IMG/VR virus record: IMGVR_UViG_3300027969_000039
Span: 186,001-250,000 of that record
Length of the DNA stretch: 64,000 bases
Strand: one strand, 5' to 3'
Shown here: positions 35,929 through 46,368 of the stretch, one piece after another
Numbering within the stretch: the first letter of the stretch is position 1
Layout of the letters: every line of letters begins with the position of its first letter
Notes under the pieces: model-generated
Told to the model about the DNA's origin: nothing
The model's input: only the letters and a program-made list of their open reading frames with translations
Database searches by the model: none
Position numbers and translations under genes: made by a program

Positions 35929-36146
35929 TAGAACCAAAAGAATACAGAGATTTAGAATCATTGATGAAGGTTAACAAACATTTGGGTATAGCATTATCTG
36001 AATTGACTAATACACATTCTTATGTTGGTGTTTTGACTGAGCAAAGACGGTTGATCAAAGTCAAACTTAGACTGGAAACCATAATAGAACAAACATTAAA
36101 AGCTGAAAAAATAGCTAAAGATAAGTTTTTTAGAAAATTAAAATGA
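35925..36146 (+). CDS. Hypothetical helical protein, 73 aa
   Basis: ATGA overlaps with both gp47 and gp46. Confidence 0.7.
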   Translation: MIEPKEYRDLESLMKVNKHLGIALSELTNTHSYVGVLTEQRRLIKVKLRLETIIEQTLKAEKIAKDKFFRKLK

Positions 36147-37906
36147 TAGTATTAAAAAATATAACATTACGGAACTTTTTAAGCATTGGTCAAGTAACAC
36201 AAGCAGTAAACTTTGACAGACAAGAACTAACACTTATCCTAGGTGAGAACTTAGACTTAGGTGGTGATGGGGCTCGTAATGGTACTGGTAAGACTACATT
36301 GATCCAAGGGTTATCCTATGCATTGTTTGGTGTACCTATCAATAGCATTCGTAAAGATAATCTAGTCAATCGTACTAATGCTAAAAACATGATGGTAACA
36401 TTAGAGTTTAGTGTTGAGGGTATTGAGTATAAGATTGAGCGTGGTCGTAAGCCAAATGTGTTACGATTCTATGTTAATAATTCATTGCAAAAAGGAATGG
36501 ATGACGCACAAGGTGAGAACAAAGAAACACAAGCTGCGATTGAAAAGGTTATACACATGAGCGCCGATATGTTCAAGCATATCGTAGCATTGAACACTTA
36601 TTCCGAACCATTTCTAGCACTTAAAAATAACGAACAGCGTGATATCATTGAACAATTGTTAGGCATTACGCTATTGTCTGAGAAGGCTGAAGTCATCAAA
36701 GGTATGCTGAAAGATACCAAAGATAATATACAACAAGAAGAATTCAATGTAAAAGCAATTGAAGAAGCCAATAAGCGTGTTAAAGAACAGATTGATGCTA
36801 CAAAGCGTAGACAGAAGTTGTGGAAAATGAAACATGATGAGGATTTAGAGCGTCTTGCTATTGATTATCAACGGTTGATTACTATTGATATTGCTGCGGA
36901 GTTACAGGCTCACAAAGATTTAACTACATATAATGAAAAGCGCAAGTCTATTGATGACCTTAACAAGCTGATTGCTCGTTGTGTAGCTGATGAAGCTAAA
37001 GAATCAAAAATAGTCAACAAACTAACGAAAGAAATTGATGATTTAAAAAATCACACTTGTTATGCTTGTGGACAAGAGTTTCACGATACAAAACATGAAA
37101 ATGTATTGGCAGAGAAGCAAAACGCATTACAAGAAGCCGGGGCACAGGTTTTAGCTACTAATAATCAACAACTAGAATATTCTCAATCATTAAAAGAATT
37201 GGGTGTATTGGGTACTATGCCTGTAACACATTATGATACAGAAGCACAGGCTATTAAACACAACAGCCAACTTGAAAATTTGATTACTCAAATTGAGAAC
37301 AAGACGGTTGAGGTTGATCCATACGGTGAGCAGATAATTGAGATGGAAAACAAAGCATTACAAGAGATTAACTTTGATAAGATTAACAAGTTGACACGTA
37401 CTATGGAACATCAGAAGTTCTTGCTTGACTTATTGACTAGCAAAGATAGCTTTGTTCGTAAAAAGATTATTGACCAGAATCTATCATACTTGAATGGTAG
37501 ACTGACGCATTACTTAGACAAGATTGGATTGCCGCATAATGTAATATTCAAAAACGATTTACAAGTTGAGATTACAGAATTGGGTCGTGAACTTGATTTT
37601 GATAACTTGAGTCGTGGCGAACGCAATAGATTGATTCTAGGATTGAGTTTTGCGTTTAGAGATGTTTGGGAGAACTTGTATAGCCCAATCAATACATTGT
37701 TTATTGATGAATTGATTGATAGTGGACTAGACACAATGGGGGTTGAAAACGCTATTGCTATTCTTAAAGACATGAGCCGTCGTAGAAAGAAGTCTATTTG
37801 GCTTGTCAGTCATAGAGAAGAATTAGCTGGTCGTGTTCCAAATGTGTTGAAAGTTATAAAGGAAGCAGGGTTTACATCATATTCTTCGGCAACTGATATT
37901 AATTAA
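36143..37906 (+). CDS. gp46: Recombination ATPase, Rad50/SbcC-like (gp46)
   Basis: NFLS; Walker A NGTGKT; coiled coil with CYAC zinc hook; LSRGE signature; Walker B LFIDE; SH. Confidence 0.95.
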   Translation: MIVLKNITLRNFLSIGQVTQAVNFDRQELTLILGENLDLGGDGARNGTGKTTLIQGLSYALFGVPINSIRKDNLVNRTNAKNMMVTLEFSVEGIEYKIERGRKPNVLRFYVNNSLQKGMDDAQGENKETQAAIEKVIHMSADMFKHIVALNTYSEPFLALKNNEQRDIIEQLLGITLLSEKAEVIKGMLKDTKDNIQQEEFNVKAIEEANKRVKEQIDATKRRQKLWKMKHDEDLERLAIDYQRLITIDIAAELQAHKDLTTYNEKRKSIDDLNKLIARCVADEAKESKIVNKLTKEIDDLKNHTCYACGQEFHDTKHENVLAEKQNALQEAGAQVLATNNQQLEYSQSLKELGVLGTMPVTHYDTEAQAIKHNSQLENLITQIENKTVEVDPYGEQIIEMENKALQEINFDKINKLTRTMEHQKFLLDLLTSKDSFVRKKIIDQNLSYLNGRLTHYLDKIGLPHNVIFKNDLQVEITELGRELDFDNLSRGERNRLILGLSFAFRDVWENLYSPINTLFIDELIDSGLDTMGVENAIAILKDMSRRRKKSIWLVSHREELAGRVPNVLKVIKEAGFTSYSSATDIN

Positions 37907-37953: not shown

Positions 37954-38604
37954 ATGTTTATCAAAAACGAATCTTATATTAGATATTATGAAATTATAAC
38001 TCAAGCAAATAATATATGCCCGCGCACTATAAAAAAGTCTGAAGCTATGGAAATCAGAGGATACATTGAAGACCACCATATCATTCCTAAATGTTTGGGA
38101 GGACAAGATATTATTTCTAATAAAGTATGGTTGACTGCCGAAGAACATTTTATGTGTCATAAACTCCTAACTGAAATGACAGTAGATAATGCTAACGGTA
38201 AAATGTGGAGTGCATTATGGCGTATGATGAATAAACAAAGTAAAAATCAAGGACGAGATTATATTATTGATGCCAAAGAGTATGCAACAGCGAGAGAACA
38301 AAATGCAAAAAATCATAGCATCAGAATGAAAGGTGAACTAAATCCATTTTATAAAAAAACACACACTGATTCTACTAAAGAAGCAATGTCTGTTAGTAAG
38401 AAGGGCAAAACTTATGAAGAAATATTTGGAAAAGATAAAGCCGACGAGATGAGAGATCGCAGAAGAAGTGAAAGTTTAGGTAAACTAAAGGGCCCACAAC
38501 TAAAATCTACATGTCCACATTGTGGTGTTGACGGTGGGTTTGGTATAATGAAACGATGGCACTTTGAGAATTGTAAATTTTTAGGTAACGTTAAAACATC
38601 ATAA
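37954..38604 (+). mobile_element. Free-standing HNH homing endonuclease with NUMOD3-like DNA-binding motif and C-terminal Cys/His motif
   Basis: EDHHIIPKCLGG...NKVWLTAEEHFMCHKLL (HNH); GELNPFYKKTHTDSTKEAMS (NUMOD3-like); CPHC...RWHFENCK. Confidence 0.85.
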
Positions 38605-38606
38605 GT

Positions 38607-39164
38607 ATGATTATGTCAAGTCCACAGAAAAACAAAGGTTCAGGTTTCGAAAGAGAAATCGCTAAATATCTATCCGATACTTACGGCGAAAGTTTTATTC
38701 GTGCCCCAGGGTCTGGAGCATATGTGGGCGGGAAGAATCAACATAGAACACAAATATTACATGAGGGGCAAGTTCGTTCATTTAAGGGCGATATTGTACC
38801 TGGACAATCATTCAGTAGAATGAATGTTGAGTGTAAGTTTTATGCAGATTTTCCGTTTCATTTGATACTTACTGGAGAGTGTAAAGTATTAGATGGTTGG
38901 CTAACGCAACTAATGGATGTTGCTGATCCAGACGATGTGAATATTCTTTTTCTGAAGTTTAATCGTAAAGGTCGCTATGTTTGTGTACAAAGCAAACTAA
39001 CATGGGTTGCGGACAATTTCACTTATTACACCTCTCAAAAACACGGAGACTGGATGATTTTCGAATTTGATAGTTTCTTCTTACATAATATACCAATATT
39101 AAAATCATATTGTTCAACAGACACCAAGTCAAATCAAAGTTCCATATTAACTATTAATGTTTAA
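38607..39164 (+). CDS. Holliday junction resolvase-like PD-(D/E)XK nuclease (Hjc type); true start possibly 38613
   Basis: KNKGSGFEREIA...RAPGSGA...GDI...NVECK; located in the recombination cluster. Confidence 0.8.
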   Translation: MIMSSPQKNKGSGFEREIAKYLSDTYGESFIRAPGSGAYVGGKNQHRTQILHEGQVRSFKGDIVPGQSFSRMNVECKFYADFPFHLILTGECKVLDGWLTQLMDVADPDDVNILFLKFNRKGRYVCVQSKLTWVADNFTYYTSQKHGDWMIFEFDSFFLHNIPILKSYCSTDTKSNQSSILTINV

Positions 39165-39169
39165 AAATT

Positions 39170-39530
39170 TGTTGGCTCAGTTGTGAGTCCTCCTTGAGTT
39201 TGTACAGATTGTGCTGTGCTGACGGATCTGGAGTATGCTTATCAGTAATGATAAGGAAAACCGAGAAGGCTCTCGTCAAAGCGAACCTTCAATGAGTCTA
39301 TATCCAACTCTATCTTGCGGATATAGAACATGCGTTGTCGAAGAATCAATTGAAAGACATTGGTAGCTTCACTACAGTCCCAAAAACACTACAGGACAAC
39401 CGGTTGCGTATAATGTCAGAAATAGGCAATTATACGGGGAACAGATGGCAAAGGATGACGGGCATGGCAAGTTTCCATTGGTAGTGCAAATTTGCACTAC
39501 CATGGCTCTCTAAGCGGCAATATATATCCG
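39170..39530 (+). ncRNA. Candidate large structured non-coding RNA (family unknown)
   Basis: No ORF of 60 aa or more; visibly more G+C-rich than other intergenic DNA; at least seven stems, including a GNRA-capped hairpin and nested helices. Strand inferred from the GTAA tetraloop and G-U pairs. Confidence 0.5.
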
Positions 39531-39569
39531 ATACAATAAAGTTTTTGAGAATACAAAATTGTAGAAAAA

Positions 39570-39612
39570 TAAGACCGAACGAAGTGAGGTCTTAGACAAA
39601 CGAAGTTTGTCT
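39570..39612. repeat. Two adjacent hairpins with GAA mini-loops
   Basis: TAAGACC-GA-AC-GAA-GT-GA-GGTCTTA and AGACAAAC-GAA-GTTTGTCT. Confidence 0.7.
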
Positions 39613-39653
39613 TTAAATGGATATCCCGATTTTGATAAATGAATAATTACGGA

Positions 39654-39890
39654 TTAGAAGAATGGCATCTGTGTTTTCTTAGTAGTTTCTAAATTATCTT
39701 CTACTATCCTGCCAATGGCTTCTCTTTCATTCGGGGACATGTTAAGTATATCTTCATATGTTACCCCTCCCCGCATGTACCAAGAAAACTTTAACGAAGA
39801 TTCTTTTATACTAAAGGCTTCTTTTTCCAGATCATCTAATAATTTTTGTATCTGCTCGTTGTTCAGAGAAAGAAGCCTTAATCGAAAAAA
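39654..39890 (-). CDS. -1 frame extension of the tail/baseplate assembly chaperone (gp51/gpGT-like); missing from ORF track
   Basis: Open from the slippery run to TAA at 39654: FFRLRLLSLNNEQIQKLLDDLEKEAFSIKESSLKFSWYMRGGVTYEDILNMSPNEREAIGRIVEDNLETTKKTQMPFF*. An in-frame TGA lies immediately upstream and the first ATG is mid-domain. Confidence 0.7.
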   Translation of the reverse strand, partial: FFRLRLLSLNNEQIQKLLDDLEKEAFSIKESSLKFSWYMRGGVTYEDILNMSPNEREAIGRIVEDNLETTKKTQMPFF

Positions 39891-40699
39891 TCAGTTACAT
39901 TTAATGTTAATGTTTGTGTGTATTCATGTGAGCAATTTACACATTGTATTTTTTGTGGTTTAATATTTGAATCGGATCTTAGATTTACCATAGTAGTACG
40001 AATCTTTTCAAATGTACTTCTATCACATGAAGATAAGAATTCAATAATAAATTTAGGATCAGTTACTGTTTCTCCAGGAACACTTATAGATTCTATAGTC
40101 ATAGATATCAAGTTCATATTAAGTGTAGATAGTTTTTTCATTATCTCGCCGGATTTAGTATTTCGTAAATTATCATCTTGCATTTCTTGCAAAACTGAAA
40201 TTTCTCTTTGTGCTTCAAACTGTGCTAAGTTAAGTTTGTTACTATCATTATATGTAATTGGTTTAAATTTGATTATTAAATCACCAATTGGAAAAGTATT
40301 ACCATAATCAACATTTTTAATGCTTTGTAGTAAACCACCTAGATTAATAGCGTAGGATCCTTCATTTTCACATTCTGGACAATTTGATTTTATTTCTAAT
40401 TCATTTCCATTAGTTGCTGAACGAATAGCAATCAATATAGCGTCTATGTCTATATTTGGCATTTTCCATGGATCTTTGATTGCAGGAATACAGCTTTTTA
40501 TAATCTCAACGACCGCGCTACCGTTAAATAATGCGTCTGGAGTTTTACTAGTAATTTCATCAATAGCAGTCATGGGGTAAACAGGAAGTTCACCACTTTC
40601 AGGCATGTCGATGGATCCCTCAGGGTAATATTGCCCTTTACTAGGTAGTGTAAGATACAATGCAGGTCTGCGGAAATACTGTTTTAAGGGGTTGTTCAT
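39878..40699 (-). CDS. gp26: Baseplate hub assembly/tail chaperone, T4 gp26/gp51 family
   Basis: LYLTLPSKG...VYPMTAIDE...DIDAILIAIRSAT...CPEC...CVNC...DFF end; GGAG Shine-Dalgarno; divergent from the tape measure gene. Confidence 0.75.
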   Translation of the reverse strand: MNNPLKQYFRRPALYLTLPSKGQYYPEGSIDMPESGELPVYPMTAIDEITSKTPDALFNGSAVVEIIKSCIPAIKDPWKMPNIDIDAILIAIRSATNGNELEIKSNCPECENEGSYAINLGGLLQSIKNVDYGNTFPIGDLIIKFKPITYNDSNKLNLAQFEAQREISVLQEMQDDNLRNTKSGEIMKKLSTLNMNLISMTIESISVPGETVTDPKFIIEFLSSCDRSTFEKIRTTMVNLRSDSNIKPQKIQCVNCSHEYTQTLTLNVTDFFD

Positions 40700-46019: not shown

Positions 46020-46034
46020 GATAAATACTATTCT

Positions 46035-46262
46035 ATGAAACTTTTTGAAATGTTTAATCCAGCTGTAGAAGGTTATCAAGATACCAGCGCGGACAACAGT
46101 AAACCAAAGTGGAAAGAAAGTCGTAAAACAAAACTAACACTAAGACAGATACGTAAACTTAGAAAAATGTTAGATGTTAGAAATTTTGAAAAAGCAAAAT
46201 ATATCAAAAAAGTGCATGAGCAGTATGGCGCAAAGCCAGATGCTGAGACTCCTACAGTCTAA
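46035..46262 (+). CDS. Small basic head-associated protein, 75 aa
   Basis: Between portal and core genes; MKLFE N-terminus; SRKTKLTLRQIRKLRKM; ATAAATA at 46021-46027. Confidence 0.7.
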   Translation: MKLFEMFNPAVEGYQDTSADNSKPKWKESRKTKLTLRQIRKLRKMLDVRNFEKAKYIKKVHEQYGAKPDAETPTV

Positions 46263-46368
46263 ATCTCTATAGTTTCCCTAAAAACGTAAAAAATACGTGC
46301 TTATTGAGCATGTTTGGTGAATAGTCACTAAATAATTCTACAAAGCCATTACTTAGGAGAAACATACA

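Follow-up and report, generated by a model that had tools for sequence, protein, structure and literature searches.

What is encoded in a long stretch without obvious genes, located directly behind a nuclease gene in an uncultured jumbo phage? To answer this, we examined a window of 64,000 nucleotides from the IMG/VR record IMGVR_UViG_3300027969_000039 (positions 186,001 to 250,000). An earlier note, made from the sequence alone, had pointed to 39170-39530 as the only long non-coding stretch, richer in G+C than other intergenic DNA, and had proposed that it encodes a large structured RNA. The observation held up on re-examination. When open reading frames of at least 90 aa were considered, 39165-39877 was the longest uncovered stretch in the window, and the only other gap over 300 nt (46020-46368) holds a 75-aa ORF. 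After subtraction of the −1 frame extension of gp26 (39654-39887, minus strand), the truly non-coding part is 39165-39653. The conserved core of this part (39165-39521, plus strand; hereafter RNA1) starts directly after the TAA of the upstream ORF, and has a G+C content of 0.434, against 0.372 for the window.

We investigated whether the stretch is conserved in related phages, since absence of conservation or covariation in syntenic relatives had been set out in advance as grounds for dismissing the RNA. Related loci were fetched by neighbour protein or by an RNA1 motif, and a profile search (nhmmer) found one full-length match per locus in 198 of the 199 loci collected at that point. These comprise 77 representatives below 97% identity, down to 54%. 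Scans of viral contigs and of metagenomes each returned at least 120 matches, and RNA1 is single-copy in this window. It is as conserved as the essential genes around it. No reading frame is shared among the relatives, ORF strand and frame differ between them, several stops occur in every frame, and substitutions show no 3-base periodicity.

The base pairs are, in contrast, maintained by compensatory changes. RNAalifold predicted 89 pairs, of which 51 are compensatory, and the paired columns are 92-100% standard pairs with many pair types. When changes were counted on the tree, the 59 variable pairs of the structure averaged 5.1 independent compensatory events, against 0.107 for 31,819 control column pairs. 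A separate pair count on the central domain (domain II) gave a paired fraction that none of 500 shuffles reached, and controls in which the structure was slid along the alignment were only 28-40% paired. G-U pairs place the RNA on the plus strand, as the earlier note had stated, with 391 G-U cells against 71 A-C cells. Comparison with shuffled controls, another criterion named beforehand, was less telling. Folding energy of the single sequence was only marginally better than that of shuffles (z = −2.0 to −2.2), the same on both strands, and would be weak evidence by itself; the comparative evidence decides the matter.

The resulting architecture consists of a 5′ domain, a four-way junction, further hairpins and two pseudoknots, with eleven helices in total (Table 1). 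Seven of the eight stems listed in the earlier note are correct and supported by compensatory changes in relatives (H3, H5, H6, H7, H8, H9 and H10). The eighth, CAGATT/GATCTG (39205-39230), is complementary in this window but is not conserved; relatives instead support GUACAG/CUGUGC (39202-39207 with 39214-39219) inside the CUCC/GGAG helix H2. The two pseudoknots were found in addition. Covariations that are not of Watson-Crick type (core positions 298/350, 72/259, and 224 with 95-241) indicate tertiary contacts. A closing helix between the 5′ tail and the 3′ CGGCAA, suggested by RNAalifold and by minimum free energy folding, was rejected because position 6 varies freely against an invariant partner.

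Table 1. Features of the RNA1 locus (positions in the 64,000-nt window)
Feature	Position	Strand	Description	Evidence
RNA1 core	39165-39521	+	Conserved core of the structured RNA, ~357 nt	Profile matches; no conserved ORF; no codon periodicity
H1	39174-39189	+	Hairpin, 39174-39179 / 39184-39189	Six pairs, 47 independent compensatory events on the tree
H2, H2a	39190-39233	+	H2 (39190-39193 / 39230-39233) enclosing an invariant UUGA / GAUCU internal loop and the variable hairpin H2a (39198-39207 / 39214-39223)	Pair table; a covariance model of this 5′ domain also finds the sister RNA2; tandem G-A reading of the loop is inferred
H3	39238-39255	+	Hairpin with GNRA tetraloop (GUAA here; GCAA, GCGA or GUGA in relatives)	Seven pairs, 47 compensatory events
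Domain II	39259-39405	+	Four-way junction closed by long-range H4 (39259-39263 / 39401-39405) and stacked on H7 (39334-39339 / 39395-39400)	98.9% of cells paired against 86.2% in shuffles; covariation score 0.390 against 0.134 in shuffles and 0.04-0.09 when slid
H5	39265-39290	+	39265-39269 / 39286-39290, with an invariant interior (UCG..AAAGCGAAC; inner stem 39273-39275 / 39282-39284)	Two covarying pairs; interior invariant in 78 sequences
H6	39292-39331	+	39292-39294 / 39329-39331 and 39297-39305 / 39319-39327; loop is the 5′ strand of pseudoknot PK1	Ten of 11 pairs show changes on both sides; 52 compensatory events
H8	39340-39370	+	Variable hairpin inside H7, 39340-39343 / 39367-39370 and 39345-39350 / 39359-39364	Compensatory variants visible in the alignments; MAFFT misaligns this region, so counts are lower
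J8/7	39371-39394	+	Conserved joining strand (ACUACA ... UACAG) with the 5′ strand of PK2 (39378-39381); position 39388 tracks the 39259-39405 pair	Invariant columns; mutual information
H9	39407-39436	+	Hairpin, 39407-39417 / 39425-39436, with a conserved AAAUA loop; loop base 39423 covaries with 39236	65 compensatory events; 5 for the 72/259 contact
PK2 and PK1, 3′ strands	39437-39448	+	PK2 (39437-39440 with 39378-39381) and PK1 (39443-39448 with 39310-39315)	PK1: 92-100% standard pairs, 2-3 pair types each, 21 events; PK2: 95-100%, 13 events
3′ domain	39456-39521	+	Near-invariant H10 (39475-39477 / 39503-39505 and 39480-39487 / 39494-39501); tentative closing helix 39456-39460 / 39515-39519; covarying homopair 39462-39514 (G/G or U/U)	H10: rare compensatory variants; closing helix from RNAalifold only; homopair (298/350): 13 of 13 changes simultaneous
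Spacer	39522-39570	+	Variable, A+U-rich, between the RNA core and the hairpins	Poorly conserved columns
Two hairpins	39571-39612	.	Conserved, between the convergent units; 39571-39593 is followed on the minus strand by a U-run and likely terminates gp26; 39594-39612 likely ends the plus-strand transcript	Covarying stems; the same hairpins follow RNA2; terminator roles inferred from sequence, not called by the consensus scan
Upstream nuclease gene	38607-39164	+	PDDEXK_15 (T5 D14-like) nuclease; context, not a demonstrated partner	Pfam PF24608, E = 4.5e-24; phrog_244; always 3-100 nt upstream of RNA1

We then examined whether the RNA belongs to a known family, as a strong Rfam hit had been named as the outcome that would remove its novelty. 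Rfam 15 models were searched at the gathering score on the window, at E up to 10 on 39000-39950, and on nine RNA1 loci, four loci of the sister RNA2 and four loci of cultured phages; only chance hits to miRNA, snoRNA and CRISPR-repeat models were obtained. There was thus no match to RNase P RNA, tmRNA, GOLLD, ROOL, HEARO (RF02033) or, even at E = 10, group I introns (RF00028), and ARAGORN found no gene in the window. Searches by blastn with RNA1 and RNA2 against 50,697 isolate phage records gave no match. A pattern scan of 185,579 bacterial and archaeal genomes gave 46 hits, all chance matches in G+C-rich DNA. The text of the 2023 catalogue of 10,006 candidate csRNAs from IMG/VR by Fremin, Bhatt and Kyrpides (PMC10690425) does not mention this locus, although its tables of candidate motifs were not examined, and the four published ncRNAs of phage PA5oct lie elsewhere in that genome. 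As far as these searches reach, RNA1 is a previously uncatalogued RNA.

Comparison with individual systems showed both resemblances and differences. Like GOLLD and ROOL, RNA1 is a phage-encoded, ORF-less and intricately folded RNA of several hundred nucleotides, recognized only through covariation and of unknown function; it is, however, smaller (~360 nt against ~580-800 nt) and has a fixed slot between gp46 and gp26 rather than a place next to tRNAs, and multimerization was not assayed. With group I introns of T4-like phages it shares a pseudoknotted core, a GNRA loop, base-triple-like covariation and nearby homing endonuclease genes (HNH, GIY-YIG). Its strand order, H4-H5-H6-H7(H8, PK2 5′)-H7′-H4′-H9-PK2′-PK1′, does not map onto P3-P7/P4-P6, and there are no flanking exons, as gp46 and the nuclease ORF are complete and conserved to their C-termini. 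In all RNA1 loci the next gene is convergent, so that RNA1 does not have the position of a riboswitch or cis-regulatory leader. The phi29 pRNA is also a structured phage RNA, working with a virion-assembly machine, and RNA1 lies beside baseplate-hub genes; nevertheless, RNA1 has no Rfam match and is twice the size, the phage group is unrelated, and there is no evidence of any link to assembly.

Whether RNA1 is a partner of the adjacent nuclease was of particular concern, because the earlier note had suggested this by analogy with HEARO/omegaRNA. The gene described there as Hjc-type encodes a 185-aa nuclease of the PDDEXK_15 (T5 D14-like) family, which is found in 481 isolate phages. In the two nearest isolates checked there is no such RNA, and no room for one, after the gene. 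A sister RNA (RNA2) from marine and other uncultured relatives, which shares the 5′ domain (covariance model E = 6e-9 to 0.05 at the expected site), occupies the same gp46-gp26 slot behind GIY-YIG-like or other small ORFs instead of the nuclease. The HNH gene, a free-standing NUMOD3/HNH homing endonuclease, is a sporadic mobile insert present in only a few of the ~200 loci, so that the proposed co-transcription with HNH is incidental. The RNA family persists without either gene, and is tied to the gp46-gp26 slot rather than to the nuclease gene. No IscB- or TnpB-sized protein is encoded nearby. As to a guide segment, the 3′ spacer is variable, but it is A+U-rich and lies before conserved hairpins rather than at a mobile-element boundary; with no target sought, this observation speaks neither clearly for nor clearly against a guide. 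The interpretation in the earlier note is thus partly supported: the ~350-nt multi-domain plus-strand RNA, its position at the end of the gp46/nuclease transcription unit, and the lack of a known family all hold, whereas the omegaRNA analogy and the nuclease partnership are not supported.

To find clues to how RNA1 is expressed, we searched the upstream sequences for promoters. Hits were no more frequent than in shuffles, and no conserved −10 element was present. A conserved CAGACACCAAGTC motif upstream proved to encode a repeated TDTKS peptide of the nuclease tail. The earlier note had also named the lack of a discrete transcript as a refuting outcome; no transcriptome data were examined, and co-transcription was not measured. 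A metagenome scan yielded only DNA contigs of at least 1 kb, without short, transcript-like ones.

On the basis of these results, the sequence comparisons establish that 39165-39521 is the gene for a ~360-nt non-coding RNA with the architecture above and sequence-invariant joining strands. They also establish that it is a fixed component of a clade of uncultured freshwater jumbo phages (T4-core, PA5oct/Atu_ph07/Rak2-related), always at the end of the rightward gp46-nuclease unit, just before the hairpins that separate it from the convergent baseplate-hub gene gp26. That it is a real structured RNA gene we regard as all but certain. What follows is inference. The RNA would be made as the terminal part of that early/middle transcript, with its 3′ end protected by the hairpins, and would probably be released by processing. 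It would then act on its own in trans; its independence from the nuclease is likely, although the nuclease gene is always the upstream neighbour within the RNA1 clade and a clade-specific partnership is not excluded. The invariant junctions and internal loops, including the UUGA/GAUCU loop shared with RNA2, would form a binding or catalytic core. We favour an RNP scaffold or protein decoy, with a ribozyme as second choice, but the scaffold mechanism is only a tentative guess, neither binding nor catalysis was assayed, and the explanation as a whole is about as likely as not. Large RNAs with many helices, pseudoknots and invariant junctions are rare, most examples being ribozymes or RNP cores, and each new class, such as GOLLD, ROOL, OLE, raiA or HEARO, has opened a line of research. 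RNA1 is a new and abundant class in jumbo phages, whose biology is poorly known, and if its function is catalytic or structural it would add a new RNA-based activity to phage biology.

Among the alternatives, a self-assembling RNA-only particle or a large ribozyme, self-processing or acting on another RNA, is possible but improbable. Its size, pseudoknotted core, GNRA loop, invariant junction nucleotides and non-canonical covariation are typical of ribozymes and ornate RNAs, it is phage-borne like GOLLD and ROOL, for which multimeric cages have been shown (10.1101/2024.12.08.627333), and the H10 loop is the palindrome AAAUUU in many members. However, the loop is not palindromic in half of the family, no ribozyme or ornate RNA model in Rfam matches, and no cleavage site or substrate can be named. 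A somewhat less probable reading is a cis-acting 3′ UTR element of the gp46-nuclease operon, which would protect the mRNA from 3′ exonucleases, insulate the convergent units or tune the upstream genes, without function in trans. The absence of a recognized promoter, the start of the RNA right at the stop codon in most loci, and the terminator-like hairpins fit a plain 3′ UTR equally well. On the other hand, such a fold with tertiary covariations is far more than 3′-end protection needs, which the two hairpins already provide, RNA2 keeps the element while the upstream gene changes, and the positional analogue in cultured phages described below is its own transcription unit.

The remaining alternatives are weaker. 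A partner or guide RNA of the PDDEXK or HNH enzyme is favoured by strict adjacency on the same strand in every RNA1 locus where the flank is present, and by a size similar to that of omegaRNAs, but is improbable on the evidence given above. A replication-origin transcript, in the manner of ColE1 RNA II or T4 origin R-loops, would suit a position beside recombination nucleases at the end of an early/middle unit, where transcription changes direction. It is very unlikely, as there is no DNA-unwinding element, no iterons or repeat array, and no skew inflection specific to the site beyond the change of gene orientation, and G-U-dependent covariation shows selection on the RNA fold rather than on an R-loop. 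A decayed or recoded protein gene, or a DNA-level site of cruciforms or protein-binding repeats, is refuted as far as sequence analysis can do so. Short ORFs of 33-49 aa can be drawn, and hairpins would also form in DNA, but the best frames carry 2-5 stops in most homologues even if one stop codon is reassigned, and hundreds of G-U cells would be A-C mismatches on the other strand or in duplex cruciforms.

We finally examined the equivalent site in cultured Rak2-like jumbo phages (Serratia BF, E. coli 121Q/PBECO4, GAP32, CBB). Here, between the recombination-nuclease genes and the 3′ end of gp26, lies an unannotated structured RNA of ~500 nt, with 52 of 109 predicted pairs compensatory. It has its own TGnTATAAT promoter and intrinsic terminator in 62 cultured jumbo phages, lies on the strand opposite to both neighbours, and occurs in 4-5 places per genome. 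Homology to RNA1 is unproven, since nhmmer profiles and the domain II covariance model found nothing in the cultured phages, nor did they in RNA2. One possible though doubtful reading is that RNA1, RNA2 and this RNA are divergent members of one ancient superfamily, which would be a core component of a whole jumbo-phage lineage and work as a new ribozyme or as the RNA subunit of a phage RNP. The reading would be immediately testable in E. coli phages such as 121Q and PBECO4; the cultured carriers, phages of E. coli, Salmonella, Serratia, Erwinia and Cronobacter, are ones in which knock-outs, Northern blots and pull-downs are routine. An ACCGAGA similarity to Serratia phage BF proved to be a BF-specific insertion. 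Apart from position, the agreement is confined to a similar pseudoknot topology and an 11-nt motif, ACAGAGCAACC, which forms the 3′ strand of a GUUGC/GCAAC helix inside an H-type pseudoknot, as in H7/PK2 of RNA1.

To examine whether the candidate RNA lies in genuinely non-coding DNA, we first inspected its flanking genes. The window is A+T-rich (37.2% G+C), and around the candidate it encodes a gp46/SbcC-like recombination nuclease subunit, a NUMOD3/HNH homing endonuclease, a 185-aa PD-(D/E)XK nuclease of the Pfam family PDDEXK_15 and, on the other strand, a T4 gp26-type baseplate hub protein. Between the two convergent units lies the only long stretch of the 64 kb that is not covered by an ORF of 90 aa or more. 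Its right-hand part is a conserved −1 frame extension of gp26, and the truly non-coding part is therefore correspondingly shorter. The first 357 nt of this stretch are G+C-richer (43.4%), and are followed by two hairpins.

Folding no better than dinucleotide-shuffled controls had been named beforehand as an outcome that would count against a structured RNA. On its own, the sequence folded only slightly better than such shuffles (z = −2.0 to −2.2), and equally on both strands, so that the decisive evidence is comparative. The neighbouring nuclease protein retrieved 80 loci from viral contigs, and a motif of the non-coding stretch itself retrieved at least 120 more. In 198 of the 199 loci collected at that stage, a profile of the stretch found exactly one copy, full-length wherever the contig allows. 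A scan of metagenomes gave at least 120 hits, mostly in JGI (Ga-prefixed) contigs, several of which were the same contigs as the IMG/VR loci; we take the habitat to be freshwater on the basis of the sample identifiers, not of any output of the searches. There were 108 distinct full-length sequences, and 77 below 97% identity, down to 54%. The longest ORFs differed in strand and frame between relatives, most sequences had 2–5 stops in their best frame even if one stop codon were reassigned, and column variability showed no period of three. The stretch is conserved, and it is not coding.

We then derived the structure. RNAalifold on 61 sequences gave 89 pairs, 51 of them with compensatory double changes, and this was refined by hand on a 78-sequence alignment. 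In the resulting model, H2 encloses an invariant UUGA / GAUCU internal loop and a replaceable hairpin, H3 carries a GNRA loop, and the long-range H4 closes a four-way junction with H5 (with an invariant interior), H6 and H7, the last containing H8. Two pseudoknots emerged, one between the H6 loop and a downstream strand (PK1) and one involving a joining strand (PK2), each with several pair types per position. Seven of the eight stems listed in the earlier note are right, and its observation of a long, multi-stem non-coding stretch held, whereas its CAGATT/GATCTG stem is not conserved.

Whether the pairs covary among syntenic relatives was another test set out in advance, and a tree-aware count supports the model. 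When branches were scored on which both columns change and a standard pair is kept, the 59 variable structure pairs averaged 5.1 events, against 0.107 for 31,819 other variable column pairs, with 21 events for PK1 and 13 for PK2. A count of pairs in a model-fitted alignment of the four-way junction gave 98.9% paired cells against 86.2% in shuffles (0 of 500 as high), 288 against 71 double-change cells, a covariation score of 0.390 against 0.134, and 28–40% pairing when partners were slid. G-U cells outnumbered A-C cells 391 to 71, and most of the A-C cells fell in the misaligned H8; the RNA is therefore read from the plus strand. Three non-helical covariations point to tertiary contacts. Position 224 follows the 95-241 pair, position 72 pairs with loop base 259, and positions 298 and 350 show a perfect non-Watson-Crick covariation, being both G in 49 sequences and both U in 29, with all 13 of 13 inferred changes on the same branches. 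G-G and U-U are not isosteric, and we could not place this last pair in a helix.

Coordinates of the genes, helices of the comparative model and related features. Coordinates are those of the window unless a locus (L-number, our designation for an individual locus) is named; RNA numbering takes 39165 as position 1.
Feature	Coordinates	Strand	RNA numbering
gp46/SbcC-like recombination nuclease subunit	36143-37906	+	
NUMOD3/HNH homing endonuclease	37954-38604	+	
PDDEXK_15 nuclease	38607-39164	+	
Part of the nuclease gene and tail with the TDTKS motif (homologous loci e.g. L156, L179, L073)	39104-39164	+	
Sigma-70-like promoter reading, reverse strand of the nuclease end	39132-39104	-	
Stretch not covered by an ORF of 90 aa or more	39165-39877		
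Truly non-coding part	39165-39653		
H1		+	10-15 / 20-25
H2		+	26-29 / 66-69
H3		+	74-80 / 85-91
H4		+	95-99 / 237-241
H5		+	101-105 / 122-126
H6		+	128-130 / 165-167 and 133-141 / 155-163
H7		+	170-175 / 231-236
H9		+	243-253 / 261-272
H10		+	311-313 / 339-341 and 316-323 / 330-337
PK1 (H6 loop with downstream strand)		+	146-151 / 279-284
PK2 (joining strand with downstream strand)		+	214-217 / 273-276
G/G or U/U covariation	39462 and 39514	+	298 and 350
Two hairpins between the convergent units	39571-39612		
-1 frame extension of gp26	39654-39887	-	
Region of the gp26 frameshift	39654-39890	-	
End of the -1 frame ORF	39654-39656	-	
gp26-type baseplate hub protein	39878-40699	-	
gp26 stop	39878-39880	-	
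Slippery heptamer	39884-39890	-	
RNA2	L257 3089-3471; L292 10836-11290; 65 loci L264-L328		
~500-nt RNA of Rak2-like jumbo phages	L331 2975-3490 (Serratia phage BF 174474-174989); L452-L458	+	
gp46-gp26 neighbourhood of PA5oct	L330 3305-4780 (PA5oct 75704-77179)		
gp46-gp26 neighbourhood of Atu_ph07	L329 1278-2384 (Atu_ph07 470077-471183)		
gp46-gp26 neighbourhood of Phosso	L247 2487-3500		

To find out whether the RNA belongs to a known family, which the earlier note had recognised would remove its novelty, we compared it with Rfam 15; nothing credible was found for the window, for nine homologous loci or for the related RNAs described below. ARAGORN found no tRNA or tmRNA, blastn found no relative among 50,697 isolate phage records, and the 46 pattern hits in 185,579 prokaryotic genomes are chance matches. 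The strand order of the helices does not fit group I introns, and there are no exons. No RNase P or tmRNA model matched, and no counterpart of the conserved RNase P regions was seen, although this was not put to a formal test. No catalogued family matches. A 2023 survey predicted 10,006 candidate structured RNAs from IMG/VR (PMC10690425); its text does not mention this locus, but its tables were not examined and a partial prior prediction cannot be excluded. We regard the RNA as a new RNA class and of high interest.

We next investigated how the RNA of the window (RNA1) is related to its neighbours. Within this clade the order is fixed: gp46, an optional insert, the PDDEXK nuclease, the RNA after 3–100 nt, the hairpins, and then convergent gp26. 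The HNH gene of the window is one such optional insert, a free-standing homing endonuclease present in only a few of the ~200 related loci, and other loci carry different inserts at the same junction. The gaps of up to 100 nt between ORF and RNA are explained by the nuclease C-terminus, which carries a TDTKS motif encoded by CAGACACCAAGTC that is duplicated in some proteins and survives as an untranslated remnant after premature stops in others. The reverse strand of this stretch also reads as a sigma-70-like promoter, TTGACT-17-TATGAT, which was not examined. The nuclease belongs to the T5 D14-like family and is found in 481 isolate phages, including Kayviruses, SPO1-like phages, Campylobacter phages and PA5oct. 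In the nearest isolates, Salicola SCTP-2 and Sinorhizobium Phosso, the next gene follows within 12–25 nt and no RNA is detectable.

Stepping outward with a divergent nuclease sequence, we reached loci that lack RNA1 but have a ~385-nt non-coding gap in the same place. This second large structured RNA of more distant uncultured phages (RNA2, core motif GUAGGGGGU..GGGU..CCGCCUCCG) occurs in 65 further viral contigs, has its own covarying helices, and has no match in Rfam or in isolate phages. It lies in the same gp46...gp26 slot before the same pair of hairpins, and is preceded in many loci by a GIY-YIG-like 140-aa ORF or other small ORFs instead of the nuclease. A covariance model built only from the RNA1 5′ domain found RNA2 at the expected position (E = 6e-9, 5e-4, 4e-3 and weaker), whereas a model of the four-way junction did not. 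RNA1 and RNA2 therefore share a homologous 5′ domain and a genomic slot but differ elsewhere, and the RNA, not the nuclease, is the constant. This argues against the suggestion in the earlier note that the RNA is a partner of the adjacent nuclease, and its interpretation was thus supported only in part. The two hairpins are themselves far more conserved than terminators need to be: the loop GAACGAAGUGA and the second hairpin AGAUGAACGAAGUUCAUCU recur in RNA2 loci, and a similar AAACGAAGUGAA loop lies near the gp26 end in Serratia phage BF. They may be a signal in their own right.

By gp46 and gp26 similarity, the phages are related to PA5oct, Phosso, Atu_ph07 and the Rak2-like jumbo phages, all of which keep gp46 near gp26 with poorly annotated DNA between. 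In PA5oct, Atu_ph07 and Phosso, this neighbourhood contains 0.7–1.5 kb occupied only by 38–112-aa hypothetical ORFs or left unannotated; no match to RNA1, RNA2 or Rfam was found there, but these are candidates for further RNAs of this kind. The four published ncRNAs of PA5oct lie elsewhere in that genome. In Serratia phage BF, the 804-nt unannotated gap contains a TGGTATAAT extended −10 element preceded by a TGGAACG motif, like the 'divergent RpoD-like' promoters described for phage CBB (PMC5259590), followed by about 500 nt without an ORF and a clean intrinsic terminator, all on the strand opposite to both neighbours. The stretch, with a conserved TGnTATAAT promoter and an intrinsic terminator, is conserved in 62 isolate genomes of cultured Rak2-like jumbo phages, including 121Q, PBECO4, GAP32, CBB, and Yersinia, Erwinia and Salmonella phages. 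It occurs at 4–5 places per genome, of which the other copies were not located, and is unannotated or crossed in some records by 30–60-aa 'hypothetical proteins' that are probably spurious. In eight sequences, 52 of 109 predicted pairs showed compensatory changes. It shares with RNA1 the motif ACAGAGCAACC as the 3′ strand of a GUUGC/GCAAC helix interleaved with a second helix, the same H-type arrangement as H7/PK2. Profile and covariance-model searches nevertheless found no similarity; we treat it as a positional analogue, and consider true homology possible but less likely than not.

The analysis demonstrates a conserved, compact, pseudoknotted plus-strand RNA fold with invariant junctions, its position at the end of an early/middle-type unit, and its independence from any one neighbouring gene across the wider family. 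Beyond this we can only infer that in the RNA1 clade it is transcribed with the upstream genes, because no promoter is recognisable, that it is stabilised at its 3′ end by the hairpins and probably processed at its 5′ end, and that it acts in trans. By analogy with other RNAs of this complexity, the invariant junctions and the tandem G-A-type loop of H2 would form a protein-binding or catalytic core. Among the possible roles, for which no transcript or biochemical data were at hand to choose between them, we tentatively place an RNP scaffold or decoy first, although even this is no more than a possibility. An RNA-only assembly or a ribozyme, taken together, appears unlikely, and a cis-acting 3′ UTR element slightly more so. 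A role as partner of the nuclease is doubtful indeed, and an origin transcript is the least likely of all.

The most solid side result is a programmed −1 ribosomal frameshift in the baseplate-hub gene gp26. The heptamer T_TTT_TTC lies 9 nt before the gp26 stop, and a conserved 76-codon ORF follows in the −1 frame, giving a predicted 348-aa fusion. The heptamer and the frame relation hold in 113 of 113 distinct related loci, and the extension is 53–100% identical at the protein level. Cultured relatives annotate a separate 59–69-aa ORF abutting gp26.
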